Shown piece after piece: positions 146-59,200 of a stretch of DNA of 64,000 bases. Position numbers and translations under genes: made by a program. The notes below the pieces were generated by a model. It worked only from the letters and a program-made list of their open reading frames with translations, did not search any database and was not told the origin of the DNA. The number at the start of each line of letters is the position of its first letter. The stretch's first letter is position 1. The stretch is from Basidiobolus meristosporus CBS 931.73 (Eukaryota > Fungi > Basidiobolomycota), in the NCBI GenBank assembly GCA_002104905.1, contig MCFE01000021.1, forward strand, positions 1 to 64,000. Direction: 5' to 3'.

Positions 146-1885
146 ATGGGTGCTTACGATTATTGTCCAATCTGCAAACGCAACCATAGTGATGGCAAAC
201 GTCATTTGTTTTCAAAATCCCACCAAGAGAAGCTGGACACCTTAATCGGGAAACAGATTGAGGTATGTTCAATATTTCTTCGTCCAAGCATAAATCCCTC
301 GTGGCTCTTTAAAGTAAAGCTTACCAATAACCACACCTTTGCACAGAAATATAAGAAATTCAAGATTTTCCTCAAAGACGTAACACCCATCGTAGACGAA
401 ACGAAGCAACCAGAGTTGTGGTGTATTTTTTGCGAGCGAGAAGTTTTCCCCTCTAGTGATGAATCAAGCGAATTCCATCTAGTCTGGTGAGAGGCAAAGC
501 TCAATTGCCAAGTGTCTTGAAACCATTTTATTGAACTAAACGCTTTCAAGTTCACACATATTTGAGCATATGGCAGATCAAGAGCACCAGGAATGCCTGA
601 ACAGTTACTTCAAAAGATTTAAAGCAAAACAACAGTACAAGGAGGAATTTAAGCTAACCCCGAAAGCACTGAACAATGTAATTGCCTGTTACGATATATC
701 GTTAGCAAGTCGCCAGTTATAGCAGAGGCCAATATTAAGTTACATCTTCGCATTTATAGTTTTATCAAAAAGGAGAGAGGAAAATCAAGGAGTTGAAAGA
801 AAAGCTAGAATTGGAGCAAAAGAGGAAAGAAATTGCCCAGAAGAAACGCGAGATAGAGGCAATTATCTCACAAGCACCTACCTCAACACAACGTATGTAA
901 CATACTACTACACTTATTCTCATTCTGATTTAAATACCCATTTTGTATTCAGTTGAGCTACCTTTAGTTCACGAAACAGTCATGAGTTCACTTGGAGTGC
1001 TCCAGAATCCCACCGGTTGGCATGGAAACCAACGTGTTTGGGGTGGTGGTATAGTTAAATTCAAGAAGGTAACTTCGAGTTTTCTTGAGTTGTTGCAAAT
1101 AGCCTTCTCAGCAACAAGTGTTCGCCAATTGTAGGCTCATCAATGGATCCCATGGCCGATCGACCTTGATGATGAGGGCAGAGACTCTACGGCTGCATAC
1201 ATGGGCAACTGGGTTATCAACTCCAAAGCCAAAGCAGGCAACGAGGGAGAAGAGAATGATAGCACCAGATTTGATGATGAGCATGTATATAAGTTGTATG
1301 AATATGATTCAGCCGAGGAGCAAGAGGATGATGGCGAAATTGATGCTGGACCAAGTAGAGCTAGTCGAGCTCAAGCACCTCGTATGTTTCTCGTACCGAT
1401 TCCTCGAAAAAGCCAGTCTTAACTCAACTATCTCTAGGTCTCACGGCTATTCAAGTCCCTGCTTTGAAATCAGGGGAAAACAATGTCCATACCGAAGGAA
1501 GTAGTAAGTACCTATGTCATGAGCTCTTTGGAACCGTTGATATAGATTTACCAACCGTTTGGTTAGTTCCTCCATGGCTGCAAGATGACGATGATGAAGC
1601 GGAAGGATCTCGTAATAATGCAATTGGCCCGTCTATCGATGTATTTCTGAAAGCCAAGGAACTTGAGCGGAAATCGAAGCTGAATCCAGAGCGCATTGGT
1701 GCCGAATTTGATCGAAGTATTTCATTTAGCAGATGGTAATTCCCTACTGGATAGTATTAACCGTTATTACCGTAATAGCGAAAAAGGCTGGCAAGTACTG
1801 GGTTCCTAACTTTGGCCGGGTTTGGAATACGGGGCCAAGGAAAGAATCGAGAATGGAGTATTTTCGGGAGACTCGCAACAAATAA
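146..1885 (+). CDS. CENATAC: CENATAC/CCDC84, minor-spliceosome-associated zinc-finger and coiled-coil protein; multi-exon, GT-AG introns
   Basis: Hand-spliced product has two zinc fingers (CPICKRNHSDGKRHLFSKSH; WCIFCEREV...HIFEHMADQEH), a coiled coil (KIKELKEKLELEQKRKEIAQKKREIE) and C-terminal motifs NVHT..IPPWL, KLNPERIGAEFD and WVPNFGRVWNTGPR. These match human CCDC84 motifs NIHSGATPPW, LPPNRVGANFD and WLPSFGRVWN. First intron 263-346; stop TAA 1883-1885. Confidence 0.9.
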
Positions 1886-2445
1886 TCTAACCAGGCTTAA
1901 TCATACCATCTGCCTTGTGCACTCAGCCTCTTTAATACGCATCTATGCCACTCCAGATAGCGTGAGGCTATTCTAGGTAATGCGCTATTTGGTGTTAGCC
2001 ATACGACACGTCAAACAGAAGTTCATTCTATCTTGTAAAAATATCTATATGTTGGCTGGCTGCAAAGCAGATACTAGACTTGATTACTCGCCCTACCTCC
2101 TCTGATACCTTTTACTGTAGAAATTAGTTGCTGTACTGTTTGTTCAAATTGAGTAAAGTCTAAAGGGGCAACTGTGGGGATTGCTTTCATTAAGATAGTA
2201 GTAAATGCTGATGGTTCTATTTCCGCTAACACTAAATGCCCAGATTAATGGTAGACTGATCAGCTTGAACTAAACTTTATTTCCAAGTGCAGTGCAGTTG
2301 CAATGGCTTGTGCGATATATGAAATATGCTAAAAGGATGTTGAAACGAAAATTAATACCCTCAGGGTAGCGTTGATCAAATACGCTAGAGCTACCACCAT
2401 CACTATAGATCACACCGATTTAGGTGGCAACATTCACATTAAGAC

Positions 2446-5429
<2,984 letters not shown>

Positions 5430-6275
5430 TCTTTTCTATTCTACTGCAGTCTATGTCGCTCTGTAGCGTGAGGTTGCTACCGGTGAACTTGCTTGATCAA
5501 GGGGAATTCCGTTCACGCTGTCAGGGTTTCGGATTCATTTTACATATTTGGTGAGGAGAATTCAGTATCTAATTTTTTTTTTTGGACCAGATCTACCACA
5601 CATCGCACGATTATGGACTTCAGCATCCGCTTCAAGAAATCTTAGCCATGGAGAAGGGCATTTCCAGGAAACCGGCTTATGGCACCCCCGATTTGTACTA
5701 TCTTGCACAACGAATAGACTACGATTGATGGAATAAGAGCCAATGGCCCACAAGCACTGTGCTTGGTGAATATAGAAGTAAAGCGAGATATTGAAAATGT
5801 TTAAGAGTGCTATATTCAGCCAAACAAGTGGGTGTAAACGTAAGTATGGTCTGTGATGGATAAATGAAATCTAATCAAAGAAAATTTTGCAAATGCGTTG
5901 GGAAGTCTTCGAGAAAATTCAAACACAAAATCAGTGGAGAGGCAAGAGGCCTGATGAAATATGGGCGATTAGCAGGCCGTGTGCCCCAAATCAAAAAGCA
6001 AAAAATGAATTGCAATCTTCAAGAGAAAACTGAGATATTAAGGATCAAGGGAAGTGGGCTCAAGCATTGGAAAATAATCCGTTGAGATTAGACTTGGGAA
6101 GGAAAATAAGAAATGCAGAGGTATTATCAATAAAATGGTGAGACCTAAAATTATAAGCCAATATGAGCTCGATAGAATCTCTTGTAGTTGCTTACCGAAG
6201 CGGCTTTCATAAAATGCAAAGGTGAAAAGGTTCACTATTCTACATAAAGTCATGTAACCAAATGTTACGACTTGA

Positions 6276-7418: not shown

Positions 7419-7450
<32 letters not shown>

Positions 7451-7495
7451 ATTGAAACCCGCGAAATTAAACGTTTGATTTGTAAAAGAGCTCAT
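6276..7495 (-). CDS. bHLH-leucine zipper transcription factor (MiT/TFE-USF/Rtg3-like); two introns
   Basis: Spliced basic region [11 protein letters not shown](V)[15 protein letters not shown], helix 2 [19 protein letters not shown], then a zipper. N-terminus is Q/S-rich. Confidence 0.88.
7409..7450 (-). repeat. CAG/CAA coding microsatellite (14 Gln) in the bHLH gene
   Basis: (ctg/ttg)n on the + strand, translated as Q14 in ORF 6392..7495. Confidence 0.9.
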
Positions 7496-10850: not shown

Positions 10851-10972
10851 CACCATTCGTCCAACTTTCTAGGGGTTACATAAACCAGCCACATTGTAGG
10901 CAAGTCACAACTCTGAGTCAAACCTCTTCTTATTACACACCACCTTTCTCTACCTTGACAATTCCTTGAAGT

Positions 10973-13064: not shown

Positions 13065-14174
13065 ATGTCTACTGCCTCCAATGAAACCGCAAAAGTCGAA
13101 AAGGTTAGTACTGAGGAAACTCCGGTTGTGAGTACTGAGCTAGGTGAGGTGGATACCCCTCAGAAAAGTGCCAAACCCAACACTCCTTTAGTAGAGGAGG
13201 AAGAAGAGCCTTTACTCAAACCCAATCCAAGGCGGTTTGTTCTATTCCCTATTCGCTATCACGATGTTTGGCAGATGTACAAAAAAGCCGAGGCTTCAAT
13301 CTGGACAGCGGAGGAGGTGGACCTCTCCAAGGATATGACGGACTGGGAGAAGCTCAACGATGGCGAACGTCATTTCATCTCTCACGTTCTTGCTTTCTTT
13401 GCTGCTTCTGATGGAATTGTGAATGAAAATTTAGTGGAAAGATTCAGTGATGAGGTCCAGATCCCCGAGGCCCGCTTTTTCTATGGCTTCCAAATTATGA
13501 TCGAGAACATCCACTCAGAAATGTACTCCTTGCTCATTGATACCTATATCAAAGACCCTCAAGAACGCGACAAATTGTTCAATGCTATCGAAACCATCCC
13601 ATGCATTACAAAGAAGGCTGACTGGGCGATGAAATGGATCTCCGATCGTGACTCTACATTCGCAATGCGCTTGGTAGCTTTCGCTGCTGTTGAAGGGATC
13701 TTCTTCTCTGGCTCCTTCGCTTCAATCTTCTGGCTGAAGAAACGTGGGCTTATGCCAGGTCTCACATTCTCGAATGAATTAATTTCGCGTGATGAGGGTC
13801 TTCATACCGATTTCGCCTGCTTGCTGTTCAGTCTTCTCCGTAAGAAACCCAGTGTTGAGAAGGTCACAGCCATCATCACTGAAGCAGTGGTGATTGAGCA
13901 GGAATTCTTGACTGATGCGCTACCAGTTGCATTGATTGGTATGAATGCAAAACTCATGGGTCAGTACATCGAATTCGTGGCCGATAGACTGCTGGTAGCT
14001 CTGGGTTGCCCCAAGGTATATGAGGTCGAGAATCCATTCGATTTCATGGATCTCATCTCACTCCAGGGCAAGACCAATTTCTTCGAGAAGCGTGTATCTG
14101 ATTACCAGAAGTCAGGCGTCATGAATTCCTCGAAGGGGGAGGACTCAGCTTTCACACTCGATGCCGACTTTTAA
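13065..14174 (+). CDS. RNR2: Ribonucleotide reductase small (R2) subunit, intronless
   Basis: 369 aa ORF with [60 protein letters not shown] and C-terminal FTLDADF. Confidence 0.97.
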
Positions 14175-22902: not shown

Positions 22903-24119
22903 ATGACTATTGCTGATACTTTCCTCTTCACCTCGGAGTCTGTCGGCGAGGGCCACCCTGGTACGTAGTAATGCTTCATCATTCCAACTACATTCTTTCT
23001 GATTTGCCACAAATCACAGACAAGATTTGCGATCAAGTGTCTGATGCGATCCTTGATGCTTGTCTTGCCCAGGACCCTCTATCAAAAGTGGCCTGTGAGA
23101 CTGCCGCCAAGACTGGCATGATCATGGTATTCGGAGAAATTACCACGAAAGCCCAGATTGACTATCAGAAGGTGATTCGTGAAACGATCCGTAAGATTGG
23201 ATATGACGACTCTGAGAAAGGCTTTGATTACAAGACTTGTAATGTGTTGGTTGCAATTGAGCAACAGTCTCCTGACATCGCCCAGGGTTTGGTTCAGGTC
23301 AGCCAAGCTATCGAGGACACTGGCGCTGGCGATCAAGGGATTATGTTTGGTTATGCTACCGATGAGACGCCCGAATTAATGCCTCTCACTGTTACACTCT
23401 CCCACAAGCTGAACTATAAAATGAGCCAACTTCGTCGCGACGGTACTCTTGGTTGGCTGCGTCCTGATTCCAAGACTCAGGTTACTGTGGAATACAAGAA
23501 CAACAATGGTGCCATGGTTCCTCTCCGAGTAGACACAGTTGTCATTTCGACACAGCATGCGCCGGACGTTGATAACGAGACGATCAGACGCGAATTGAAG
23601 GAGAAGGTAATTGACGCGGTAATCCCTGCCAATCTTCTTGACGACAGGACTGTCTACCACTTGAATCCTTCCGGTAAATTTATCATTGGTGGTCCTCAAG
23701 GTGATGCCGGTCTCACCGGTCGTAAGATCATAGTGGACACCTATGGCGGATGGGGTGCTCATGGTGGTGGCGCTTTTTCCGGAAAGGACTGGTCCAAGGT
23801 GGACCGCTCAGCAGCCTATACATCCCGTTGGATAGCTAAATCCTTGGTTGCTGCTGGCTTGGCGAAGCGCTGTTTGGTCCAGCTTTCGTATGCCATCGGC
23901 GTGTCTGAACCATTGTCTATCTTCGTTGATACTTACGGTACTAGCACCAAAACCAATGCTGAGCTCTTGGGCATTATCAAGAAGAACTGGGACCTTCGCC
24001 CTGGCGTGATCGTGAAGGAGCTCAATCTTTTCAAGCCAATTTACGCCAAGACCGCGTGCTATGGACACTTCGGCCGTGATGAGTTCTCTTGGGAACAGCC
24101 CAAGAAACTGGATATCTAA
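22903..24119 (+). CDS. SAM2: S-adenosylmethionine synthetase; one intron after GEGHP
   Basis: Exon 1 [19 protein letters not shown] joins [13 protein letters not shown]. Signatures GAGDQG and GGGAFSGKD are present, and the C-terminus reads ACYGHFGR. Confidence 0.97.
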
Positions 24120-39221: not shown

Positions 39222-42200
39222 TCAAAAGATTGGTCTTGTTGGACATACGGTTTTAATAACGCTACTGCATATAGTATACGTGACTGAATGGGTCCCGGTT
39301 GTTGATACGGATGAACCATGGCTCTCAGAGGTGCCAGATACGCTTGAGGACCCCGAGTTACTGAATGTTTCAGATGTCTCTGAAGAAGGCTCTGTGCTGC
39401 TCAGAGACTCAGAAGACGGTTCCGTTGTGTTGGATGGCTCTATTGTGGTTGTGCTACTGGTGTTGGATATCTCTGATGTAGGCTCAGTGCTGCTCGGAGA
39501 CTCAGAAGACGGTTCTGTGGTGTTGGAAGGCTCTGTTGTGGTTATGCTACTGGTGTTGGATGTCTCTGAGGTAGGCTCAGTGTTGCTCGGAGACTCAGAT
39601 GAAGGTCCTGTGGTGTTGGGTGGCTCTGTTGTGGTTGCGTTACTTGTGTTGGATGTCTCTGATGTAGGCTCAGTGCTGCTTGGAGACTCAGAAGACGGTT
39701 CCGTTGTGTTGGAAGGCTCTGTTGTGGTCGTGTTACTTGTGTTAGATGTCTCTGATGTAGGCTCAGTGCTGCTCGGAGACTCAGAAGACGGTTCTGTGGT
39801 GTTGGAAGGCTCTGTTGTGGTTGTGCTACTGGTGTTGGATGTCTCTGATGTAGGCTCAGTGCTGCTTGGAGACTCAGAAGACGGTTCCGTTGTGTTGGAA
39901 GGCTCTGTTGTGGTTGTGCTACTGGTGTTGGATATCTCTGATGTAGGCTCAGTGCTGCTTGGAGACTCAGAAGACGGTTCCGTTGTGTTGGATGGCTCTG
40001 TTGTGGCTGTGCTACTGGTGTTGGATGTCTCTGATGTAGGCCCAGTGCTGCTTGGAGACTCAGAAGACGGTTCCGTTGTGTTGGATGGCTCTGTTGTGGC
40101 TGTGCTACTGGTGTTGGATGTCTCTGATGTAGGCCCAGTGCTGCTTGGAGACTCAGAAGACGGTTCCGTTGTGTTGGATGGCTCTGTCGTGGTTGTGTTA
40201 CTTGTGTTGGATGTCTCTGATGTAGGCCCAGTGCTGCTTGGAGACTCAGAAGACGGTTCCGTTGTGTTGGAAGGCTCTGTTGTGGTTGTGCTACTGGTGT
40301 TGGATATCTCTGATGTAGGCTCAGTGCTGCTCGGAGACTCAGAAGACGGTTCTGTGGTGTTGGAAGGCTCTGTTGTGGTTGTGTTACTTGGGTTGGATGT
40401 CTCTGATGTAGGCTCAGTGCTGCTTGGAGACTCAGAAGACGGTTCTGTGGTGTTGGATGGCTCTGTTGTGGTTGTGCTACTTGTGTTGGATGTCTCTGAT
40501 GTAGGCTCAGTGCTGCTTGGAGGCTGAGAAGACGGTTCTGTGGTGTTAGATGGCTCTGTCGTGGTTGTGTTACTTGTGCTGGATGTCTCTGATGTAGGCT
40601 CAGTGCTGCTTGGAGACTCAGAAGACGGTTCTGTGGTGTTGGAAGGCTCTGTCGTGGTTGTGTTACTTGTGTTGGATGTCTCTGATGTAGGCCCAGTGCT
40701 GCTTGGAGACTCAGAAGACGGTTCCGTTGTGTTGGATGGCTCTGTTGTGGTTGTGCTACTGGTGTTGGATGTCTCTGATGTAGGCTCAGTGCTGCTTGGA
40801 GACTCAGAAGACGGTTCTGTGGTGTTGGGTGGCTCTGTTGTGGTTGCGTTACTTGTGTTGGATGTCTCTGATGTAGGCTCAGTGCTGCTTGGAGGCTGAG
40901 AAGACGGTTCTGTGGTGTTGGAAGGCTCTGTCGTGGTTGTGTTACTTGTGTTGGATGTCTCTGATGTAGGCCCAGTGCTGCTTGGAGACTCAGAAGACGG
41001 TTCCGTTGTGTTGGATGGCTCTGTTGTGGCTGTGCTACTGGTGTTGTATGTCTCTGATGTAGGCTCAGTGCTGCTTGGAGACTCAGAAGACGGTTCCGTT
41101 GTGTTGGATGGCTCTGTTGTGGTTGTGCTACTGGTGTTGGATGTCTCTGAGGTAGGCTCAGTGCTGCTTGGAGACTCAGAAGACGGTTCTGTGGTGTTGG
41201 ATGGCTCTGTTGTGGTTGTGCTACTTGTGTTGGATGTCTCTGATGTAGGCTCAGTGCTGCTTGGAGGCTGAGAAGACGGTTCTGTGGTGTTGGAAGGCTC
41301 TGTCGTGGTTGTGTTACTTGTGTTGGATGTCTCTGATGTAGGCCCAGTGCTGCTTGGAGACTCAGAAGACGGTTCCGTTGTGTTGGATGGCTCTGTTGTG
41401 GCTGTGCTACTGGTGTTGGATGTCTCTGATGTAGGCTCAGTGCTGCTTGGAGACTCAGAAGACGGTTCCGTTGTGTTGGATGTCTCTGTTGTGGTTGTGT
41501 TACTGGTGTTGGATGTCTCTGAGGTAGGCTCAGTGCTGCTAGGAGACTCAGATGAAGGTTCTGTGGTGTTGGATGGCTCTGTTGTGGTTGTGCTACTGGT
41601 GTTGGATGTCTCTGATGTAGGCTCAGCGCTGCTTGGAGTTTCAGAAGTCTCGGTTGTAGTTGTACTGCCAGTACTCGATGTCTCTGATGGTGGTTCCGGG
41701 CTAGTTGACGGCTCAGGTGTGGACTCGGTAGATGTGGTTATCGAGCTCATGGTGGTTGTAGGAGATGGTTGACATATAGCGATAGTTCCCTGTTGTTGAC
41801 ACCGTTCACCAGAAGCGCAAGGAGTATAACTCCACGTTGAAGCAAATGCACAATCTAAATGTCCTGAACTATAGCAAACTTGCCCCTGAATGCAACTTCC
41901 TCCTGGTGTCGGGTGCAAAGGATCGATCTCAGACCCATCTGTACTTACGAGCGATGATGTTCCTTTGTCTGTAGATGTACAAAATACTTTGAAAGAGGTT
42001 TCTGTGTCATAATAGCAAGTGCCTCCGTCTCCGCAAGTGCCGAATTGCCACCCCCCTTCTCCACAGCCCAGGAATCCTCCAGTCCCGTAGCAGACATAAT
42101 CATCCAGATTGCAAGGGCCTCCGGTAGTAACTAACGTTGTAATACTTGTACCCTCGGGATTATCAGTAAAAGGATAAGTTACACTACGAGTGGGTATATA

Positions 42201-42890
42201 CCCCTCAGTAGTTTCACATTGTATAACCCACGGATAGCCCTGAACGTAGCTACACGATCGGTAACTGGGGCATTCGTAACTGTTCCAAATGCCAGATGTG
42301 CAGTAGAGATAATCCTTCGAACCATAGCAGACATAGTCGCCTTCATTGCAGCTTTCTCCAGGAGTAAAGTAGTCAGTTGCTTGGGTTCCGGATGGGTTAG
42401 TTGGTGCAGTATATGTCAGCGTACGGGTTCTTGGCGTAGTGGTGGTAGTTCTGGTAAATTCTATTTCAGAAGAATAGGTAGTAGCAGAAGTACATTTTAT
42501 TTTCCACGGCTCCGGCTTATAGTCACAAGTAAATCCAGAGCTACAAGCATTCACCACCCAAATTCCATTGTAGCATAAAAGATATTCTGTTTGGCCATAG
42601 CACACCTCGTCGTCATCGTTACAAGGGTCTCCCGGTTGCAGGCCCCTGGGCAAATCTCCTACAGGGTTTGGAGGAAGTGGATATACGACGCGCCAAGGTG
42701 CATCAGTTGAAGATGATACCTCCTGGATAAATTCAACTATATGGGGTGTCCTGTAGTGCAATCCTTGGTATGCATTCCCTTCTCTGGCAGCAGGTACATT
42801 GGTATGTAGATTTGTAGTGTGAAGGCTAGCTGCTGATAAAGCTACCTGTGTTGTATAGCAAATTAAAGATTTCAATGATGATAGTCTCAT
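39222..42890 (-). CDS. Secreted protein with four 6-Cys (CBM19-like) domains and a long S/T/E/P mucin-like repeat stalk
   Basis: 1222 aa intronless ORF with signal-like N-terminus and four C-x5/6-C-x7/8-C..W..C-x5-C..C modules (e.g. PGDPCNDDDEVCYGQTEYLLCYNGIWVVNACSSGFTC). About 24 repeats of 31 aa follow. No hydrophobic C-terminal anchor. Confidence 0.85.
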   Translation of the reverse strand: MRLSSLKSLICYTTQVALSAASLHTTNLHTNVPAAREGNAYQGLHYRTPHIVEFIQEVSSSTDAPWRVVYPLPPNPVGDLPRGLQPGDPCNDDDEVCYGQTEYLLCYNGIWVVNACSSGFTCDYKPEPWKIKCTSATTYSSEIEFTRTTTTTPRTRTLTYTAPTNPSGTQATDYFTPGESCNEGDYVCYGSKDYLYCTSGIWNSYECPSYRSCSYVQGYPWVIQCETTEGYIPTRSVTYPFTDNPEGTSITTLVTTGGPCNLDDYVCYGTGGFLGCGEGGWQFGTCGDGGTCYYDTETSFKVFCTSTDKGTSSLVSTDGSEIDPLHPTPGGSCIQGQVCYSSGHLDCAFASTWSYTPCASGERCQQQGTIAICQPSPTTTMSSITTSTESTPEPSTSPEPPSETSSTGSTTTTETSETPSSAEPTSETSNTSSTTTTEPSNTTEPSSESPSSTEPTSETSNTSNTTTTETSNTTEPSSESPSSTEPTSETSNTSSTATTEPSNTTEPSSESPSSTGPTSETSNTSNTTTTEPSNTTEPSSQPPSSTEPTSETSNTSSTTTTEPSNTTEPSSESPSSTEPTSETSNTSSTTTTEPSNTTEPSSESPSSTEPTSETYNTSSTATTEPSNTTEPSSESPSSTGPTSETSNTSNTTTTEPSNTTEPSSQPPSSTEPTSETSNTSNATTTEPPNTTEPSSESPSSTEPTSETSNTSSTTTTEPSNTTEPSSESPSSTGPTSETSNTSNTTTTEPSNTTEPSSESPSSTEPTSETSSTSNTTTTEPSNTTEPSSQPPSSTEPTSETSNTSSTTTTEPSNTTEPSSESPSSTEPTSETSNPSNTTTTEPSNTTEPSSESPSSTEPTSEISNTSSTTTTEPSNTTEPSSESPSSTGPTSETSNTSNTTTTEPSNTTEPSSESPSSTGPTSETSNTSSTATTEPSNTTEPSSESPSSTGPTSETSNTSSTATTEPSNTTEPSSESPSSTEPTSEISNTSSTTTTEPSNTTEPSSESPSSTEPTSETSNTSSTTTTEPSNTTEPSSESPSSTEPTSETSNTSNTTTTEPSNTTEPSSESPSSTEPTSETSNTSNATTTEPPNTTGPSSESPSNTEPTSETSNTSSITTTEPSNTTEPSSESPSSTEPTSEISNTSSTTTIEPSNTTEPSSESLSSTEPSSETSETFSNSGSSSVSGTSESHGSSVSTTGTHSVTYTICSSVIKTVCPTRPIF
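39380..41640. repeat. Coding tandem repeat, 93-nt unit, about 24-25 copies, with a 372-nt higher-order period in part
   Basis: Anchor gtgctgct(t/c)ggag recurs every 93 nt from ~39395 to ~41627. The ggaggctga variant occurs at ~40519, ~40891 and ~41263 (372 nt apart). Confidence 0.95.
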
Positions 42891-44158
42891 TGCTTCTAAA
42901 TCATTTGAGAGTCCTACAGTTCTCTATATATATTATAGGCTTTGAGTTGAGAGAACTTGGATATCTAAAAATACATACTCTAGTCAAAACATCCGTAATC
43001 TACAACGGTTCTCAATGTTGGTATTACTACAATCCATTGGAATTTATTATATCAACACCATCCATCCATTACTATTCTCCACATTCAGCTAATGAAGCTA
43101 GAGGGATATCATGTTGGTTCATAAAAATAACACACAGGAAACCACCTATCTATGGGAATATTTATCAGAATTGTAAAAACGATATTGGCAAGCTAGTCCT
43201 CAACACAATTGGCAAACACCGCATATGTTCATTGTAATTAGATTACTATAATCTGAATCACCTGCGTATTTTAGATGTAGAACTCGACAAAATTCATGAA
43301 TGATAATGCGTTTAAGAACTTGTAACTGAGTAACCCCAATGATATTACAATACTAAAATAATGAGTAAAAATAGCTTCTGAGCAACCAAATTACTCCGAA
43401 GTCTTCTTTTTGGTCATTTGCGCTCTAGCGATATGGAGTATTCCTATTAGAAACTGAACAGGCTATAATCAGTTGGTGCACAATACTTCCCTTTAGTGGT
43501 AGATAGCATCCGATATGGACTTGGGCAACTCTCCAGCTAACCATTGCCTTTTCGAGTGTAGAAAGATTACCGCAATGCCATAGCGTCGGCAAATAGATTC
43601 GACGCGAAAGGAAGTATCATTATACATCAGCGAATGATGGGACATCAACGAAGTACTTGGTCATAGCCGCTGCCATGGCGTTGGTTTATTAATCCAACTT
43701 CGCCATTTGTCCGGATTCACATGCATCTATAAATAACCTTCTGCCCGCTACATGGACTTGGAAATTAGGCTCTACTTGTTTGATTTCATGCCGATAATCA
43801 TACTTCATTAGTACCCGGATGTAATCACTTGGAGCAACCTGTATTGATTGAGCACTCAATGGAGTAAACAATGCTCAAAATACAGAGCCCAAAATACATC
43901 TCAAAACTTCATATTGGCCACAGTGCTCGCATCGTCATTGTGAGATTGTAACCTATTTTACTACATCTTTATGCCACCCCTATTCAGATTCATCCAAATA
44001 CGATCGAGGATTTCAATTTTCCTGTAGACTTGATGGGGTAGTTAAGGTCGAGATTAACAATTTTCAGGATCACACATGTAACTGGCCGGAAAGAGTTTTA
44101 TTTGTGAGTACACCATTTATTACAGTATATCGCAATTCCACTTGGATACACTACATCC

Positions 44159-46064
44159 ATGAGTGAGGTAGAGGCCAGAAAAAAATATCTTTCGACTTTA
44201 CGTCAAGATGCCAAGGCTTTTAACCAGGAAATAGAGAGTATAGTCAGTTTATTGGGAACGGATTCAAAAGATTTATTGGAACAAATTTCGGTTAGTTTTA
44301 TGTGCTTGAAAAGGGATCGTTCACAATCTTATTTGATCCCATGTTTAGAAAGGACACAAACTTCTGCAATGCCCGTTTGATCATAACCATAAAGTTCCCA
44401 AGGAAACGTATTCTGCACATTTTAAAAAGTGTGAGTTAAGGGCTCTGGGAATCACCAGCGAAGATAATAAACCGGTAAGAAGGGGCTATATCGATGGTTA
44501 GTATAATAAACTAAGTGGTTTATGTTCTTCTTAGCTCCCTAGCTCTCTTGGCTTCTACGAAAAAGCACCAGCAGTAATATCTTTGATAGAAGGTTGGTTT
44601 CCTAGCTTGATATTTACCAACCATTTTCTACAAAGTATCTCACTTTTGACTCAAAGTACCGGTTGGAACGGATCTTGGAGATCAGGACTGCAAAGTGGAA
44701 AATCGGTATTTTGCAAGTTGTACCTCTCATGTAAATTGTACACTGACGCCTCTCTTTTATTTTCATGTAGCGAATCATCAACTAGACATTGGGATAAAAT
44801 TGATCTTGAGAATCTTGAAATAGAATCAACCGAAGATCTCCACGGCGATGTACTGTTAACAGAGAACGAAAACATCCTGGACAACATACTGAATTCGGAT
44901 AATATAGATGTACGATTGCGGTAAGTACTTCGTGGTATTATTCCTTTACCGCTAGTGCTTATGAATTATTTAAGAAAACTCAACAAATGGACACAAATCC
45001 CTCGGTTTTATGAAAAACTGAATATCGAAGAGTTAAATCCTATGAAAACCCGTGGTTGGCTTGTCAATAACTTGCCGCAAAACACACAGCTACGTAATTC
45101 AATCAGCCCAAGTTTCAATTCAGAAATGGAGCTTTCAGACTATATATATCGCCATTTGCTGCTACCTGCTAAAGGCATCGAAGAGTTCAAGAGACATGTA
45201 GAACCTTATTTCGGGCCAGGTAAGTTATAAGCAAGGCAGTCATCGATTCTGCCACGATGTTGACTTCGACGACTTTTCTCAGCATCACAGATGTTCACAT
45301 TAAAATTGTGGAAATATCTCATGTCTGAGTTGATTCTGCTAATGGTTCTTCCAGTCAATGATGCCATTCTTCCGGTAACGTGTTTACGGCCAGTTATTTG
45401 GCTGTGGGCCGATGACTAACTGTGTACTATAGACAAATCAACAGTCATCAATAGATGAGCATTCTGAACACTCGCAGTTGCCAAGTGAGATATCTATAGA
45501 ACCAGTAACAGATAACACCGGTGAAAATTTAGTTTATAACGTATGTATATCCGGCGTTTATAATTATAAGGAGAACCTAACCATTTTGCAGCTGCTTGAT
45601 CGCCAGCCTCGCCTACAGCCTGGTTCAGCTTTGGCTGTATCTCAGAGGCGCAAAAAATATGAGCACCTTATTCAAGCAAGTAGATATATTCGAGAACTTC
45701 ACGGACGCAACGATCACAACATCTATGACGGATTTGAAGAGGCTCTAGAAAGAGCGAAATTAATCAAAGGTTAGTTTTGCCTATATCCGCCTGCTATGGT
45801 ATGATTTAATCAACTTTATACCAGAGCAAAATCAGAAGAGGAAGTCGAAAGCTGACTTACTTGCGGAGCAAAGAGATTATAAAAGAAGAAGGAAATCGTA
45901 TCGCGCCAAGAATGTACGGATTACTCAAAGAACCCCCACTCAGGTATGAGCCTTAATTGAAGCGAGCCGACTAGAATATAGTACTCAATGCATTTAATCA
46001 TCATTAGATTCAGCGTGATTTAATTGCTGCGTATATGGAGGATTTTGAGTTATTGAACTCTTAA
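44159..46064 (+). CDS. SNRNP48: U11/U12 snRNP 48 kDa protein (U11-48K); multi-exon
   Basis: Exon 2 encodes CHHC zinc finger CPFDHNHKVPKETYSAHFKKC, then LPSSLGFYE. The final exons encode LLAEQRDYKRRRKSYRAKNVRITQRTPTQIQRDLIAAYME, matching human ILAEVRDYKRRRQSYRAKNVHITKKSYTEVIRDVINVHME. Stop TAA 46062-46064. Confidence 0.92.
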
Positions 46065-47839: not shown

Positions 47840-47899
47840 GAAAAATTTTGGATGGAGCAGAAAGAATGTAGTTGATTAATTTCTTCAATGATACTCATC

Positions 47900-49953: not shown

Positions 49954-51987
49954 ATGTTCGAAATTGACAACCTTTCCACAAACACTATTCGTGTCCTCGC
50001 TGCTGACACTGTCAAGAAGTCTAACTCTGGCCATCCTGGTGCCCCCATGGGTTGTGCAGCAATGTCTCACGTTCTCTTCTCCAAATTCATGAAGTTCAAC
50101 CCAGAAAACCCAAAGTGGGTATCTCGTGATCGCTTTGTTCTATCTAATGGTCATGCTTGCGCCTTGCAATACGTTTTGCTTCATCTCTGTGGCTATGACG
50201 TTTCCATGGATGACCTCAAGTCGTTCCGTCAAATGAACTCCAAATGTCCCGGACATCCCGAAAACTTCATGACTGCGGGTATCGAGGTTACTACTGGCCC
50301 ATTGGGCCAAGGTATTTCTAACGCAGTTGGTCTTGCCATGGCTGAAGCCAACTTTGCTGCTACCTTCAACAAGGAAGCTTTCCCGGTTATTGACAACTAC
50401 ACATACGCCATCCTTGGTGATGGTTGTTTGCAGGAGGGTGTCTCTGCTGAAGCTGCTTCTTTGGCTGGTCATCTTAAATTAGGAAAACTGATTGCTTTGT
50501 ATGATGACAATAAGATTCAAATCGATGGTTCTACCGATTTGTCTTTCACCGAAGATGTATGCAAGCGCTTCGAGGCATATGGCTGGCAAACTCTTACAGT
50601 CGAAAATGGTGATTCGGATTTCCAAGCCATTGCTGACGCCATTGCTGAAGCCAAGAAGGTAACCGACAAGCCAACCTTGATTAAGATCCGCACTACCATC
50701 GGTTATGGATCACTTTTGCAAGGAAGTGAGAAGGTTCACGGAGCTCCTTTGAGTAACGATGATTTGGCTCAACTTAAGACAAAGTTCGGATTTGATCCCG
50801 CTCAGAGCTTCGCCGTTCCTGAGGAGGTTAGAAACTACTACAAGAACGTCAAGGAGCAAGGTGCACGCCTCGAGGCCGATTGGAACGTGATGTTCGAGCA
50901 ATATGCTGCCCAATACCCTGAACTTGCTGCTGAGCTTAAGCGTCGTATTTCCAACGTCCTTCCCAGTGGATGGGAGAACGCTCTCCCCAGATATACTCCT
51001 GAAGATCCTGCTGTGGCTACCCGTAAGCTTTCTGAGATCGCCTTGAACAAGATTGCTGAGGCCGTCCCAGAACTGGTTGGTGGCTCTGCTGATCTTACTC
51101 ATTCCAACTTGACCAGATGGAAGTCGGCTGTTGATTTCCAACACGAGAGCACTGGACTTGGAAGCTATGCTGGTCGCTATATTCGTTTTGGTGTTCGTGA
51201 GCATGGTATGGCTGCCATTTGCAACGGTATTGCCAGTTATGGAGGTCTTATTCCATTCTGCTCCACTTTCTTGAACTTCATTTCTTACGCACTCGGTGCT
51301 TCCCGTTTGTCATCCCTCTCTCATCTTCGTGTTATCTATGTCATGACTCATGACTCTATTGGTTTGGGTGAAGATGGACCCACCCATCAACCAGTTGAAA
51401 CCTTGACTACTCTTCGCGCTACTCCTAACACCTTGGTCTTCAGACCTGCTGATGGTAATGAGGTGTCTGGTGCCTACTTGGCTGCTATCCAAAACAATCT
51501 CAGACCAAGTGTCCTTGCCCTTTCTCGCCAGAACCTTCCACAGCTTGCTGGCTCCTCGATTGAAAACACACTTAAGGGAGCATATGTGTTGAGTGATGTT
51601 GCCAACCCTGCTATTGTTCTCGTAGCCACTGGTTCCGAAGTTTCTGCTTGTGTGGAGGCTGCTAAGGAACTCGCCAAAAACAACATTCAGGCTCGTGTGG
51701 TCTCGATGCCTTCTATGGAGCTCTTTGATGAACAAGAACAATCCTACAAGGAATCAGTCTTCCCTCGTGGTGTTCCCGTCCTCAGTGTTGAAGCCTTGAG
51801 CACCTTTGGATGGAGCAAATATGCACATGCTTCCATTGGTATGACCACCTTCGGTGCCTCTGCACCAGCAAATCAACTCTATGAGAAGTTCGGTATGACT
51901 CCACCTGCCATTGCAGATAAGGCTATGAAGACCGTTGAGTACTACAAGAGTGAACCACTGCCATATCTTATGGTAAAACCATTCTAA
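49954..51987 (+). CDS. TKL1: Transketolase; start probably ATG 49954, possibly after a 5'UTR intron
   Basis: SGHPGAPMG, DRFVLSNGHAC, TTGPLGQG, TPP-binding LGDGCLQEG..N, FGVREHGM and THDSIGLGEDGPTHQP. Confidence 0.97.
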   Translation: MFEIDNLSTNTIRVLAADTVKKSNSGHPGAPMGCAAMSHVLFSKFMKFNPENPKWVSRDRFVLSNGHACALQYVLLHLCGYDVSMDDLKSFRQMNSKCPGHPENFMTAGIEVTTGPLGQGISNAVGLAMAEANFAATFNKEAFPVIDNYTYAILGDGCLQEGVSAEAASLAGHLKLGKLIALYDDNKIQIDGSTDLSFTEDVCKRFEAYGWQTLTVENGDSDFQAIADAIAEAKKVTDKPTLIKIRTTIGYGSLLQGSEKVHGAPLSNDDLAQLKTKFGFDPAQSFAVPEEVRNYYKNVKEQGARLEADWNVMFEQYAAQYPELAAELKRRISNVLPSGWENALPRYTPEDPAVATRKLSEIALNKIAEAVPELVGGSADLTHSNLTRWKSAVDFQHESTGLGSYAGRYIRFGVREHGMAAICNGIASYGGLIPFCSTFLNFISYALGASRLSSLSHLRVIYVMTHDSIGLGEDGPTHQPVETLTTLRATPNTLVFRPADGNEVSGAYLAAIQNNLRPSVLALSRQNLPQLAGSSIENTLKGAYVLSDVANPAIVLVATGSEVSACVEAAKELAKNNIQARVVSMPSMELFDEQEQSYKESVFPRGVPVLSVEALSTFGWSKYAHASIGMTTFGASAPANQLYEKFGMTPPAIADKAMKTVEYYKSEPLPYLMVKPF

Positions 51988-53207: not shown

Positions 53208-56200
53208 ATGAAAGTAGAAAAACATTCTGAACAATCAACTACGAATCCTAATTATTCCCCTATTCGCCCTACTGTGAATACCACCTTTCGCGCTGTTCCA
53301 ACGAACCCTAGCTTTGACTCTGTAAATATACATTTTTCAGCAGTAATGAGGTTATCAACCCTAACAGTTTGTATTTAGTCAGTGACAGGTTTCACTAGAG
53401 AAAGTATTGGCAGTCTGCAAAGCGATACTTGCGATTTCGAAGGAAGGTATACCAACCGTTTCAGCGAGACAGACACTATACGTTTAATCGATCATATGGA
53501 TGTTGAGGAAATTTCCCTCTCTGACAACATCGATTCTGGAAAGCATTCAAAAACATCACACACCCCATCCCGTTTATACTCCGTGGGCAAGGCTTTTCGT
53601 AGAGCCTCTACCCGTGTTATTGAGCTATCTACCACTTGTTTTGACAATCCAATACCTTCGCACGGCAACTCGGACCAAAAGCATGATCACAATAGCTTAG
53701 ACGATGTACCTATTCCGCAACAACATCGTCTCGGAGGTCGTTCCCTCTTCCTATTCGGGCCCAACAACCCGACAAGAATATATCTTGCAAGGTTGTTCAA
53801 CAGAAGGTAATTGCGATATTGATAGTAATGGAGCTTGGTATTTTCATTTACTAACTGCATGCACTTTCTAGATGGATGGGATATTTGATTACTCTATTAA
53901 TTGTCCTTAACTGGCTCCTACTCTGTGTCCAATACTGGGAACCTGGTGCTCGAGACTTCACTTTCGGCTTCAGTTGGACTGATTATCCGTTGTTAGTCAT
54001 ATTTATACTTTATACGTAAGCATCTTCTCAGCGAACACAATGCAATGACGTCCAAATCGTTAACGGCTTTTATGTAGCTTTGAAACGATTGCAAGAATCA
54101 TTGTGTCTGGGTTCATCATCAACCCACCCACGTCTCAACAGAGACAACCAAGAGTTGAAATTGGAAAAAAATCACCGTTTCTCGTAGTAGAGGTTCACTC
54201 TGAGATCGACTCGCTTTTCCCAGATAGGGCATACTTGCGACATAGTTTCCAGCGGATTGATTTTGTTGTCGTTGTGTCTTTCTGGGTCAACATGATATTG
54301 ATGCTGACTGGATACGGCCGGTTCACTGTGTTTAGTGCTTTGAGCGCACTTCGACCATTCAGACTTATATCGATGACCTCGGGATCTTGGGTATAAATTG
54401 ACAATGCCTAAACCAGCCGATATTCGGACTAACTTATTTTCCTTTGAAGACGATCTTAAGATCTCTCAAAAAGAGTGCGCCAGTCCTGGTTAATGTTTCG
54501 CTCTTCTTGCTATGCTTTTTCTTACTGTTTGGGTAATTAATTATGTTAGACGTTTTACCTTTACGCAAATGCTCACTGACATTGTATGTATACCAGTATC
54601 ATCGGCGTTATCTCATTCGAAGGGTCATTTGATCGACGATGCGTTTCTCAAGGTTGGTGTTCATTAACCATATGATATGCACTTCAATCCCATTAATATC
54701 ATCTCAATAGATTATCAGGAAAGCGACTATGCAAATTTAGAATCTTTTGTTACTGTTCCAGAGCGATACTGTGGACACTACAATGAAACCTCTAAAGGTT
54801 ATAGATGCCCGGCGAATTTTAACTGTGTAATGTGTTTCGTTATTTTCTTTGTAGGATATCCCAGCCATTTAACAGCATACTCTATAGGTGAATGTCGGTA
54901 ACCCTTTTGAAGGAACCCTCGGGTATGACAACATCTTTCAGACAGTTCCAATTTTATTTGGTATCACAGCTGGTATGTTAATGGCAACGCACTGGTTAGG
55001 AAGAGCTTGAGTGACAACACTAACCACCTCTTCAGCCCAAGGTTGGCTTAGCCTGATGTTTCAAACTATGGATGCGGAATACCCATTACCATCCGCCTTA
55101 TATTATATTATCGGAGTTGTTGTATTTAATTTTTGGCTGCTAAATCTATTCGTCGCGGTGATAACAGAAATGTTTGCCAAGATTCGCGAAGATACCAACC
55201 ACAGTGCTTTCACCTCCAGGTATGATAACCATTCTAGTGGATTCTGATTAATACTTATTTATCACGTTGTCCTACAGAGACAAGGCAGCAATTGTTCTGA
55301 ATGACGGTAATGATGAGTTAGATGAGCAGGGGAAGAAAAAGATTCCATCGAAACCAAACTTCTTGCAAAGAAATTTCGATGCTACCTATTATTTTTGGAT
55401 CTTGCTGGTTGCTGCTGATCTGGTTATCATGTGTGTTCGCTCGTATGATCCAGACGATGAAGATAATGTCTTGACACCCGACCCGACCATGAGTACGACT
55501 TTTCTTACCAACTCACTCATACATAACACTCTCCTCGATCATATGAAATAATTCGCAATTTCTATTAGTCCAGGGCGATTTCTTAACTGCCGAGCGTGTT
55601 TTTACATCATTATTCGCACTCGAGATCATCCTTCGTTACTTTGCCATTTTGAAGCCTGGACGGAGGTCTAAATTCTTTCACTCAAAGAGGAACAGACTGG
55701 ACTTGTTTTTGGCAGTTGTCACTTGCTTAATTCAGATCCCCCCTATACCTACAGTTACTTCTGGAATGGTATATCGGTATCTCACAGTATTCCAGGTAGC
55801 AAGATTCTACCGAGTTGTTATGGCAGTGCCTCGTCTTCGTAGATTAATTGTTCGTACATTTCGTATTCACTGAATTGCTTGAAGTATACTAACCATTCAC
55901 ATTTTTACAGACTCGTACTGTCGGAAACGTTATCGGTATGATGAACTTGTTCCTTTTCATTTTGATGTGCATTGGTGTCAGTGCAACTATGGTAGGTGGG
56001 CTGCATTCCATGACAAGATTACTCGTATTGAACAGGCCAATTATGTGTTAGGCGATGCAATTGTTTGGTGGCCAAATAGGATCCGAAGACGGCTTGGACA
56101 TGAATTTTGATAATTTCGCATCTAGCTTCCTGGCATTGTTTCAGGTACATTTGGAGTTAAGAGCTAGTTCACCAGCTAGATATTGATTTTCTTTGTTGGA

Positions 56201-59200
56201 TGTAGGTATTCTCGGGTGATAACTGGACCGATTTGCTGTACGGCTTAACCGGAAGCCAGCGTAAGCACAACATGGCGGTCTTTTCCTCAGTTTTTATTTT
56301 GTTGTTTTTCTGCTTTTCAAACTGTGAGGCATTTTCGTGTCGAATCTCGTTATCTACCTACAATTATTCATGCGTTCCTTTTTAGTCATCCTACTTAACA
56401 TGCTCGTTGCTGTGATCGTGGAGAATTTTGAAATGGACGAAGAAGAAAAACGCAAACTTCAGCTTGAGGAGACCATCAAAGGAATTGAAACTCGGCAAAA
56501 AGAAGGTCAGGCCGTTATCAGGTAAATTCAATGATTCGCAAGTCACGGCTGTAGAAGCATACTCAGGTCGCTTTTGATACAGTAAATGGAACCCATATCG
56601 ATTCTTAAAGCCCAGCCCGAAGGCCTTGGAGGTTGACAGTATTCCATCGAACCTTGTTCTACCCGTTCAGAAGCGGGCTGCTCGCGAATTTCTGCAAGAA
56701 TCAACCTCGAAAGTAGGTGCTCTTAAGCTGCGAAAGTGAAGATTTTTCGAAGCTAACCCGTAATTTTTCAGTCTATTGGAGCCCAACTCAACAGATCCAA
56801 ATCAAAGGGATTTACTTCCCGGGTTCGAAGGTTCCTGAAAATGGACTACGACGATGTAGAACTCGGGAATACAGTTCAAAGGGCTGAAACGAGGGACGAC
56901 AGATTTATAGATGAAGCAGCCGGCAGTAAAGGCCCCAGCATGGAGCAGCACAGCGAGCGCGAGGCAATTCTTAACGACTTCATGACCGCCCATCCAACTT
57001 ACGATACATCGTTGTTTATATTCAAGCGGAATCACCCTATTAGAAAGATCTGCAAGAAGTTAGTGGGAAATTCAGATCCCTCGATCGAGGGAGTGTCGTT
57101 ATCGCATTTCAAACTAAGCCACGCGTTTAACGGGTTCATTTTCGTGTGTGTTGTTGTGAGTGTCGTATTTGCTGCGATCAACACTCCATTGGCTCAACGA
57201 CAACGAATAATCGAAAAGTACGGAAGCCTAGACAATTATACTAGTAAACGCGAGGTGGACATCTTCTACATGATCGACATCATCGTCACTGCAGTGTTTA
57301 CCATCGAGTTTCTCATCCGTATCATTGCCGATGGATTTATGTTTACACCCGAGGCTTATTGGCGGAGTATATGGAATCGTGTGGATTTCTTGGTTTTGAT
57401 CACCCTGTATATTACCTTGGCAATCAACCCCCGGGATGCTACCGGAATTCCGAGAACACTGAGAGCGGCCAAGGGCTTCAGAGCATTAAGAATTGCTAGC
57501 TATTTCTCCGCAGTTCGAGAGGTGTTCTACGGCACCTTGTACTCAGGTTTCCCTCGAATCGTTGATGCAGCGCTACTTTCCCTTTGCTTCATCCTCCCAT
57601 TCTCGATCTACGGGCTAAATATCTTTGCTGGACTGATGTACAGCTGTAACGATGACAATGGAATTTCTAGCCGGGCCGCCTGCTCAGGTTTTTACCCCGA
57701 CAAGGATAATGGATTCTTGAAACCGCGCGTTTGGTCGAACCCGGATAACTTCAACTTCGACAACTTCAGATCGTCGCTTTTGGTTTTGTTTGAGATTGTA
57801 TCCAACGAAGGCTGGGTCGATGTAATGTTGACCACGATGAAAGTCAAGGGGTACAATCTTCAGCCCGAAGACAAAAATGCCTGGTATAATGCCATCTTTT
57901 TCATGATCTACAACATGGTTGGGGCAGTTTTCGTGTTGACCCTTTTTGTGGCGGTTATCATCGAGAACTTCAACACCCGTAATGGAACTGCATTCCTGAC
58001 CGCTGAGCAACGAAGATGGATTGATATGAAAAATCAGCTGAAGCAAATCAAACCATCTATTCGACCAGTGACTCCACCTGTCGACAGAGTTCGGAGGTGG
58101 TGTTACGAAATGGCTATCGAAAAGAATGGGTTTCTATCTAAATTTGTGATCGGGGTGACCATATTTGACGCCTTGCTTTTGGTAACGCAATATCATACTC
58201 AACCAGATGTCGTCGATACCGTTAAAGGTACGAATTGGTAAGCGTCATCTATAGAAGTCACCGGTATTAACATTGCCCTGTAGACATTCTCTTTGGATTA
58301 ATCTTTCTGTGTTATATGTTTGAGATCGTTGTGAAGTGCCTTGGACTTGGTGTTAGAACGGTATGGTGTGCACCATTAATGTCACATCAATGGACGAAGT
58401 GTTGATCTTCTACTTTGTAGGTACTAATGAATCCATGGAATGTGTTCGATATTGTCATTACCTTCGGTCTTGCTATCTCGTCCATTTCGCAGTTGGTAGA
58501 GAAGTTTGTGTTAGGTATAGCAAACGGATCTCGTCTGTCGTTGAGAATCTTCGTTACACTGGTGTTGTTTAAAGTAGTCCAGAAAATCGATAGTTTGCAT
58601 CAGCTCCTGAGAACAATGGCGTAAGTGGATTATTATTGTGAATGCAAAGCACCGGAGTAACCGATTTTTCGTCATTGCAGTGTCAGTTTGAGAACCATTG
58701 TTAATTTACTGGCCGTTTGGTTCTTGGTTTTTGTGATTTATGCCATCGCCTTCATGGAGATTTTTAGTTTGACAAAGATGGGCGAGAATGGAGGGGCTCG
58801 AGCAAATTTCCGGAACTTCTCCAACTCCATATTGAATCTATTGGGAATGTCCACCGGTGAAGGCTGGAACGATTTTATGCATGACTTTGTAACCCAAAGC
58901 CCTGAATGCGTAGCCAGCGACAGCTATTACTTGCAAACAGATTGTGGAAGTCCCGCTTGGGCCTATTTCTTATTCATCTCCTTCAACATCATCTCGATGT
59001 ACATCTTTGCCAACCTGTTCGTCGTCGTGGTCATGGATGGATTCTCATACTGCTATCAAATCGCGTCCTCATATTCTCTGATGAAGAGAGACGATATTAG
59101 AAAATATCCTTTGAGTTTTGCTCACAACCTATTGCTTTAGAATTGCCAATGTATATATCCTTAACAGGTGCTCACTTTCAAGAAGGCATGGGGCGAAGTA

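Follow-up and report, generated by a model that had tools for sequence, protein, structure and literature searches.

Two minor-spliceosome protein genes and a conserved U12-type AT-AC intron of CCH1 in one 64-kb window of the Basidiobolus meristosporus genome

What does it signify when a single stretch of a fungal genome appears to carry two genes for proteins of the minor spliceosome and, inside a calcium channel gene, an intron of the kind that this spliceosome removes? The window considered here, that is, the whole stretch of B. meristosporus DNA that was analysed, is 64,000 nucleotides long. It corresponds to positions 1–64,000 of scaffold MCFE01000021.1 (assembly GCA_002104905.1) of strain CBS 931.73: its SAM synthetase reading frame is 100% identical to the protein of this strain, and its transketolase gene has the same coordinates in the window as in the public record. 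A preliminary description had recognized in it a CENATAC/CCDC84 gene, a U11-48K gene and a perfect AT-AC intron in CCH1, had presented them as unexpected in a fungus and had concluded that an active minor spliceosome controls Cch1 expression. The identity and coordinates of the CENATAC gene and the identity of the U11-48K gene are borne out, as are the type, host gene and coordinates of the intron. Very probably, the window holds two intact minor-spliceosome protein genes and one U12 AT-AC substrate intron.

The presence of a minor spliceosome and of minor introns in B. meristosporus is correct but already known, and the framing as a surprise fails, this species being the published fungal record-holder for minor introns. 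In the available text of the first of two catalogues, it has 249 minor introns (0.554%), the highest density among fungi (Larue and Roy, 2023; PMC10639083). The range over both is 237–249, and the second, as far as its available text goes, reports U11, U12 and U6atac genes together with a putative, divergent U4atac (Olthof et al., 2024; PMC11347168). Both treat the same species and the same assembly as the window, and CCH1, CENATAC and U11-48K of B. meristosporus go unnamed in the portions of these papers at hand. Rfam searches of the 64-kb window gave no minor snRNA, at gathering scores or at E values up to 1. A working minor spliceosome is well supported by the published introns and snRNAs, by U12 signals under apparent selection in three phyla and by splicing in Basidiobolus ranarum. 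Knowledge of the minor spliceosome itself is unchanged by our results, which independently confirm a complete-looking minor-splicing system in Basidiobolus and supply gene models, with names, for two proteins of that system.

The substrate intron lies in a channel gene that was modelled by spliced alignment guided by the B. ranarum protein:

53208 to 60456, forward strand: CCH1-type four-domain calcium channel gene, 27 exons, 26 introns, 1885 amino acids
59104 to 59175, forward strand: U12-type AT-AC intron of CCH1, phase 2, 72 nt long; it separates the end of domain IV S6 from the 307-residue C-terminal tail
59104 to 59112, forward strand: U12 5' splice site ATATCCTTT, exact consensus, invariant in all eight genomes compared
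59158 to 59165, forward strand: U12 branch-point sequence TCCTTAAC, followed by the last 10 nt of the intron; CCTTRAC in all eight genomes
59174 to 59175, forward strand: 3' terminal AC of the intron; YAC in all eight genomes

Two exon reading frames of this gene match Ion_trans, and the 1885-residue model aligns end to end with the 1895-residue B. ranarum protein. As expected of the Cch1 family, there are several Ion_trans domains and the nearest named relatives are CCH1: the top ones, from Actinomortierella, Diversispora, Apophysomyces and Schizosaccharomyces, are all called 'Calcium-channel protein CCH1'. The public B. meristosporus model has identical ends and 1907 residues; its treatment of the junction is deduced from that length only.

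Introns of the U12 AT-AC class are recognized by a 5' splice site of the form /ATATCCTT and by a TCCTTRAC branch site near the 3' end, without a polypyrimidine tract. The first is matched by ATATCCTTT at 59104–59112 and the second by TCCTTAAC. Excision of 59104–59175 joins ...RDDIR[N]FKKAWGEVD... in frame, and the restored stretch ...DDIR[N]FKKAW... is gapless against other fungal CCH1 proteins and identical to that of B. ranarum. No frame-keeping GT-AG alternative was found in the sequence and reading frames at this point, and reading through the segment leads to a stop after 13 intron-encoded codons. The introns on either side, at 58621–58680 and 59255–59308, are of the U2 type.

An intron with the same signals occupies the same phase-2 position in B. 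ranarum, Apophysomyces ossiformis, Diversispora eburnea, Geosiphon pyriformis and three Logan assemblies. With B. meristosporus, these make up the eight genomes compared, namely the two Basidiobolus species, one member of the Mucorales (Apophysomyces), two Glomeromycota (Diversispora and Geosiphon) and the Logan assemblies. The latter are represented by three fragmentary products of a homologue search with the domain IV exon; they were considered as close Basidiobolus relatives and rejected as such, their flanking exons being nearer to Mucorales sequence. In the public B. ranarum proteins, the junction is spanned by RDDIRNFKKAW, so that these are spliced exactly at AT-AC. Apart from two single-base variants of the branch motif, the signals are invariant in the eight genomes, whereas the introns are 70–121 nt long and their interiors, 36–64% alike under forced alignment, are in effect unalignable. 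Precise absence of the intron, with the exons fused at that very point, was found in three further early-diverging lineages, represented by Entomortierella, Massospora and Syncephalis.

These comparisons indicate that the intron is old within fungi and that selection has preserved its U12 signals in three fungal phyla as the interior drifted. It appears to survive in those examined lineages that are reported or likely to keep a minor spliceosome; at least three others have lost it by clean deletion. From the signals and their conservation we infer that splicing of this intron in B. meristosporus is U12-dependent. Full-length Cch1 would then require its removal by the U12-dependent spliceosome, and retention would end translation after the 13 intron-encoded codons, with loss of the 307-residue tail.

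Such a requirement is a dependence and nothing more, and the earlier claim that the minor spliceosome controls Cch1 expression is unsupported as written. In its strongest form, the claim would make the intron a regulated switch, the activity of the minor spliceosome or the level of CENATAC gating the choice between full-length Cch1 and a tail-less or degraded product. Retention would indeed cut the channel short just past domain IV S6, and three phyla have kept the intron in this position. There is also an animal precedent: when U6atac is lowered in rat cardiomyocytes, minor introns of Scn5a and Cacna1c are retained, and channel protein and current fall (PMC8767276). Against a switch, three lineages lost the intron cleanly yet kept CCH1, and since the gene outlived the loss, the channel does not need the intron. 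In addition, Larue and Roy argue for neutral processes behind much of minor-intron evolution and saw no sign, in the fungus Rhizophagus, that minor splicing is regulated with the cell cycle (PMC10639083). We regard a regulated switch as improbable. Slightly more doubtful again is the idea of a conserved checkpoint, in which an ancient U12 intron, dating back at least to the common ancestor of Basidiobolus, Mucorales and Glomeromycota, would tie the regulatory tail of Cch1 to minor-spliceosome activity. If true, this checkpoint would mirror in fungi the reliance of animal Na+ and Ca2+ channels on minor introns.

Conserved U12-type introns in animal voltage-gated Ca2+ and Na+ channel genes were reportedly described by Wu and Krainer in 1999. 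They resemble the fungal intron in belonging to the same channel superfamily and in their AT-AC consensus, which combines ATATCCTTT with a TTCCTTRAC-type branch site. Their position differs: the conserved animal site lies in segment 1 of domain I, whereas the CCH1 intron follows domain IV S6 (PMC6259924; PMC8767276). The minor introns of rat Cacna1c, numbers 2 and 13 of 44, are likewise placed unlike that of CCH1. On these published sites, we rejected the notion that the CCH1 intron occupies the animal Cav/Nav position.

The two protein genes appear to be ordinary, intact and intron-rich minor-spliceosome genes. Their family assignments were examined exon by exon rather than on whole spliced proteins. 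The first has the following structure:

146 to 1885, forward strand: CENATAC/CCDC84 gene, 9 exons, 400 amino acids, eight introns, each GT-AG; open spliced frame
146 to 262, 347 to 486, 551 to 677, 760 to 892 and 953 to 1068, forward strand: CENATAC exons 1 to 5
1135 to 1381, 1438 to 1503, 1567 to 1716 and 1779 to 1885, forward strand: CENATAC exons 6 to 9

Exons 1, 2, 3, 8 and 9 match the Pfam family PF14968 (CCDC84) in order, at profile positions 1–31, 39–69, 83–121, 250–295 and 299–329 of 330 and with 34.4, 15.1, 20.4, 44.3 and 39.2 bits, respectively; three of the five clear the gathering cut-off of 25.3 bits singly. Both the N-terminal zinc-finger part and the C-terminal conserved block of the family are thus present, in the proper order. 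Among sequences of solved structures, exon 8 matches human CENATAC alone (8y6o_R, E 1.7e-7) and aligns to its residues 242–287. The middle third of the Basidiobolus protein (exons 4–7), in contrast, has no detectable similarity to the human one. CENATAC occurs together with the minor spliceosome and has a preference for AT-AN introns; its association with the U4atac/U6atac snRNP and its requirement mainly for AT-AN introns are known for the human protein only (PMC8280824). The available text of Olthof et al. records its absence from many fungal lineages (PMC11347168). The gene is intact here, which is mildly informative on the U4atac question. Human CENATAC contacts the U4atac cap. Given this contact, an intact CENATAC speaks for a divergent rather than a missing U4atac in B. 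meristosporus, where U4atac is the one minor snRNA not confidently found (PMC11347168).

The second gene has the features listed below:

44159 to 46064, forward strand: U11-48K (SNRNP48) gene, 11 exons, ten GT-AG introns, 437 amino acids, with Pfam and solved-structure matches
44361 to 44435, forward strand: single-copy CHHC zinc finger of U11-48K, exon 2, PF05253 positions 1–25 of 25, E 3.2e-7
45836 to 45940, forward strand: C-terminal basic motif (RDYKRRRKSYRAKNV..., RDYKRRRxSYRAKNV), exon 10, corresponding to human SNRNP48 residues 204–238

Human U11-48K is a U11 snRNP protein that binds the U12-type 5' splice site and U11-59K. The Basidiobolus protein shares with it a single N-proximal CHHC finger followed by the RDYKRRRxSYRAKNV block, in the same order, and the exon 10 motif matches human SNRNP48 alone among Protein Data Bank sequences (E 1.7e-7), which provides family-specific sequence beyond the finger. 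It differs in size, with 437–490 residues against 339 in human SNRNP48, and some 200 central residues are without detectable match. The central exon has no solved-structure match, and an ESM Atlas feature search of this region, which gave low recognition and unrelated Helitron-like clusters, was discarded. In the public model, the gene begins at 43871 and encodes 490 residues, so that the 5' end is uncertain; the N-terminus and two short exons (44535–44592 and 44657–44705) are provisionally drawn from a reading of the sequence alone. Pfam matches on the public model are weak.

Could this gene encode another CHHC zinc-finger protein, TRM13-like or GTSF1-like? PF05253 spans all three families (U11-48K, TRM13 and GTSF1), and GTSF1 is the top whole-sequence match of the finger exon among solved structures (6x46_A, E 1e-8). 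The GTSF1 score, however, adds up two fingers (20.5 and 18.1 bits), whereas the best single-domain match is human U11-48K (2vy4; 8r7n_F residues 55–90) with 30.1 bits. One finger, as found here, is typical of U11-48K and TRM13; GTSF proteins have two and were not found in fungi (PMC2562017). A Pfam scan of seven other exons gave no methyltransferase or CCCH domain, and one CHHC finger without a methyltransferase domain is the architecture of U11-48K by published criteria (PMC2562017). As the C-terminal motif, too, has SNRNP48 as its sole match, a different CHHC protein is very improbable, and we retain U11-48K, a protein still undetected in fungi as of 2008 (PMC2562017).

The CENATAC and U11-48K genes lie 42 kb apart, and U11-48K is 7 kb upstream of CCH1. 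This closeness could suggest a functional or co-regulated cluster. The loci are separated, however, by about a dozen unrelated housekeeping genes, among them those for ribonucleotide reductase, SAM synthetase, MnmG, EBP, PIG-Y and transketolase, and a homeobox gene. With 249 minor introns over roughly 1700 windows of this size, about one window in seven is expected to hold one. For about a dozen minor-specific protein genes, a rough estimate puts the occurrence of two in one window somewhere in the genome at a few percent, and the present window was chosen after the fact. We consider a cluster highly unlikely; the proximity of the three is most likely due to chance, the reading that the preliminary description had itself allowed for.

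Motif counts place the CCH1 intron in perspective. Taken by itself, the 5' octamer is as frequent in the window as chance predicts, with five occurrences against 5.1 expected, whereas in simulated random windows of 64 kb the full composite U12 motif arises at a mean of 0.0245 per window (47 windows out of 2000). What decides that the intron is real is its conservation, at an identical codon, in the seven other genomes. The remaining occurrences of RTATCCTT were rejected as U12 candidates: those at 13329 (reverse strand) and 18014 (forward strand) are antisense to coding ORFs, that at 60733 (forward strand) is past the CCH1 stop and would enter a ligase gene, and that at 59155 represents the branch site of the CCH1 intron. 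No further credible U12 intron emerged from a looser scan of the window. It has a next to negligible probability that the major spliceosome excises the 72 nt as an AT-AC intron of the U2 type, a kind that does exist (cited in PMC8280824), or that they are not removed at all. The segment has a full U12 5' splice site and TCCTTAAC 10 nt from the 3' end, with no polypyrimidine tract, and it is in these elements that the intron is conserved across eight genomes. It also contains an in-frame stop, and the public B. ranarum proteins omit it exactly. Public gene models from Apophysomyces, Diversispora and Geosiphon draw the U12-type intron of CCH1 incorrectly, and this intron may serve as a marker for U12-aware gene calling in early-diverging fungi.

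Minor introns are recognised at their 5' splice site and branch site by U11, with 48K, and U12, after which U4atac/U6atac.U5, with CENATAC, joins. In Basidiobolus, U11/U12 recognition followed by U4atac/U6atac.U5 joining would be expected at such introns, and full-length Cch1 would depend on U12-type removal of 59104-59175. The loci concerned are as follows.

146-1885, forward strand: CENATAC/CCDC84, 400 codons, ATG at 146, TAA at 1883-1885, eight GT-AG introns
44159-46064, forward strand: U11-48K (SNRNP48), 437-codon frame, ten GT-AG introns of 51-65 nt
53208-60456, forward strand: calcium channel gene CCH1, 27 exons, 26 introns, 1885 aa, TGA at 60454-60456 (guided alignment)
59104-59175, forward strand: U12-type AT-AC intron of CCH1, 5' end ATATCCTTT, branch site TCCTTAAC at 59158-59165, AC 10 nt further

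Ion_trans domains are found in the ORFs 56841-58238 and 58688-59101, and an exhaustive search with the latter as query retrieved full-length relatives, the best being B. ranarum K7432_002447, followed among named proteins by "Calcium-channel protein CCH1" of Actinomortierella, Diversispora and Apophysomyces and, lower down, Schizosaccharomyces Cch1. The CCH1 model was obtained by protein-to-genome dynamic-programming alignment guided by the 1895-aa B. ranarum protein, with GT-AG, GC-AG and AT-AC introns admitted in all three phases. GT-AG introns were chosen in 25 of 26 cases, and AT-AC solely at 59104-59175. B. meristosporus and B. ranarum share the order ligase, CCH1, transketolase. The public (GenBank) model has identical ends and 1907 aa. 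Since its excess of 22 aa equals the length of the 66-nt CCH1 intron at 59740-59805 (forward strand), which is in frame, stop-free and bounded by good GT...AG signals, the public model has probably left that intron in while removing the AT-AC intron correctly, to judge from length alone.

Described beforehand as perfect, the AT-AC intron indeed has all the sequence features of the AT-AC U12 class and is conserved across genomes; no polypyrimidine tract is present in 59104-59175. It is a phase 2 intron, splitting a codon after the second base, in line with the published bias of minor introns against phase 0 (PMC10639083). Its removal yields …SYSLMKRDDIR-N-FKKAWGEVDIHGNGYI…, the beginning of the tail after domain IV S6, with the junction residue N at 1578 of 1885. 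Read-through would meet a stop after 13 intron-encoded codons, and a GT-AG alternative was rejected, as the sole nearby GT/AG pair shifts the frame and leads to a stop. The motif by itself is modest evidence: the U12 5' octamer occurs in the window at chance level, and the complete composite motif appeared in 2.4% of simulated random 64-kb sequences. A decoy at 60733-60740 (forward strand), ATATCCTT followed 173 nt later by AATCTTAAC and then AG, lies past the CCH1 stop, runs into the convergent ligase gene and is not a credible intron.

It is the comparative evidence, not the motif alone, that settles the identity of the intron. Seven other genomes carry an intron at the identical codon position.

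Genomes sharing the CCH1 intron (L numbers are handles for the compared loci)
B. ranarum, L008: intron present
Apophysomyces ossiformis (Mucorales), L009:6547-6638: intron present
Diversispora eburnea (Glomeromycota), L010:7055-7175: intron present
Geosiphon pyriformis (Glomeromycota), L014:6759-6831: intron present
Three Logan assemblies, L001-L003, L004 and L005-L007: intron present, flanking exons Mucorales-like in appearance

Each of the seven has ATATCCTTT, the branch motif (T/A)CCTT(A/G)AC and a YAC 3' end. The homologous introns measure 70-121 nt, and their interiors are 36-64% alike under forced alignment, the level of unrelated AT-rich sequence. Such conserved signals within unalignable interiors mean that selection has kept the U12 signals alone, and for very long; these signals are under purifying selection, and the pattern looks like that of a working U12-dependent intron. 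RDDIRNFKKAW spans the junction in both public B. ranarum proteins. Entomortierella beljakovae, Massospora cicadina and Syncephalis fuscata (L011, L012, L013) have the exons fused with the codon count unchanged, a precise loss of the intron in three separate lineages. In three public models a GT-AG pair was forced, so that the AT-AC intron is mis-drawn: that of A. ossiformis (KAF7724875.1) reads into ATATCCTTT (…IRKYPFICKVW…), that of D. eburnea (CAG8487610.1) misses 9 conserved residues, and that of G. pyriformis (KAG9307249.1) misses about 20.

Both genes of the machinery proposed in the preliminary description were upheld by profile and structure matches. Splicing of the eight CENATAC introns (56-84 nt each) gives a single open frame, and family tests were run exon by exon rather than on spliced proteins. 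Exons 1, 2, 3, 8 and 9 match Pfam PF14968 (CCDC84) collinearly, at 1-31, 39-69, 83-121, 250-295 and 299-329 of 330, and three of the five individually exceed the gathering score. Because the match opens at profile position 1, near residue 6, the whole N-terminus lies inside the window. For exon 8, the sole solved-structure match is human "Centrosomal AT-AC splicing factor" (8y6o_R residues 242-287, E 1.7e-7). The product is an intact member of the CCDC84/CENATAC family.

Exon 2 of U11-48K encodes a complete CHHC finger (PF05253 positions 1-25 of 25), whose top single-domain score among solved structures is human U11-48K (30.1 bits, 2vy4; also 8r7n_F residues 55-90). GTSF1 has a nominally better score, which sums two weaker fingers, and was rejected. 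Exon 10, containing RDYKRRRKSYRAKNV, matches human SNRNP48 residues 204-238 and no other solved structure (E 1.7e-7). GTSF proteins carry two fingers and were not found in fungi, and TRM13 has CCCH and methyltransferase domains besides its CHHC finger (PMC2562017). A single finger, the lack of a methyltransferase domain and a C-terminal block specific to the family amount to the U11-48K architecture, and 44159-46064 encodes an intact member of that family. The middle of the protein had no match in Pfam, solved-structure or ESM Atlas feature searches, and two short exons (44535-44592 and 44657-44705) are based on sequence reading alone. In the public model the start is an ATG at 43871, 288 nt upstream of 44159, and the product, at 490 aa, is 53 aa longer than 437; several small 5' exons are possible in 43871-44158 (forward strand). 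Given a start at 44159, the distance from finger to N-terminus is about equal to that in human U11-48K.

The minor-splicing biology of B. meristosporus is already published. The species, used as a reference, has 249 minor introns (0.554%), the highest density in fungi (Larue and Roy, 2023; PMC10639083), or 237 in another count, which also reported U11, U12 and U6atac genes in the fungal lineages concerned, only a putative, divergent U4atac in B. meristosporus and many fungal lineages without CENATAC (Olthof et al., 2024; PMC11347168). Across eukaryotes CENATAC is found together with the minor spliceosome, and it favours AT-AN introns (de Wolf et al., 2021; PMC8280824). Our literature search found no paper pairing Cch1 with minor introns. 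Animal Cav/Nav genes have a conserved U12 intron in domain I S1 (PMC6259924, PMC8767276), and the minor introns of rat Cacna1c are 2 and 13 (PMC8767276), whereas the fungal CCH1 intron follows domain IV S6 and so occupies a different site. The additions made here are small: named CENATAC and U11-48K gene models, how old the CCH1 U12 intron is among fungi and where it occurs, and the errors in three public models. An active minor spliceosome controlling Cch1 had been proposed; the observation itself is confirmed and the minor-splicing reading is right in substance, but 'control' was overstated. That three lineages lost the intron cleanly, and that neutral evolution has been argued for (PMC10639083), speaks against a regulatory role being required.

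Co-location of the three loci, earlier thought possibly due to chance, is read as chance. Ordinary housekeeping genes lie between them:

22971-24116: SAM synthetase ORF, 100% identical to the B. meristosporus CBS 931.73 protein
49954-51984: transketolase, whose exact product match lies in MCFE01000021.1 (GCA_002104905.1; record positions 39954-61987) at coordinates equal to those of the window, which is thus the first 64 kb of the scaffold

With 249 minor introns in about 1700 windows, about one window in 7 is expected to hold one, and a rough estimate gives a probability of a few percent that two genes from a set of roughly a dozen for minor-specific proteins share a window somewhere; the choice of this window was post hoc.

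Two further features lie on the reverse strand.

39222-42890, reverse strand: repeat-built ORF, 1222 aa, a gene in the public record
60857-62557, reverse strand: ATP-dependent DNA ligase, uninterrupted 566-aa ORF with adenylation and OB domains

The first has no Pfam match and consists mostly of a repeat at 39373-41647 (24.5 tandem copies of a 93-nt, 31-aa unit, 92% identity); it accounts for the anomaly in GC and AT skew at 40-44 kb. The public ligase model covers 262 aa alone (60857-61645), against 563 aa in the B. ranarum ortholog (74% identity). Beyond a few early-diverging fungi, the nearest relatives are hundreds of metagenomic 'DNA ligase-1' proteins of about 427 aa (33-39% identity), which suggests a phage- or bacterial-type ligase.
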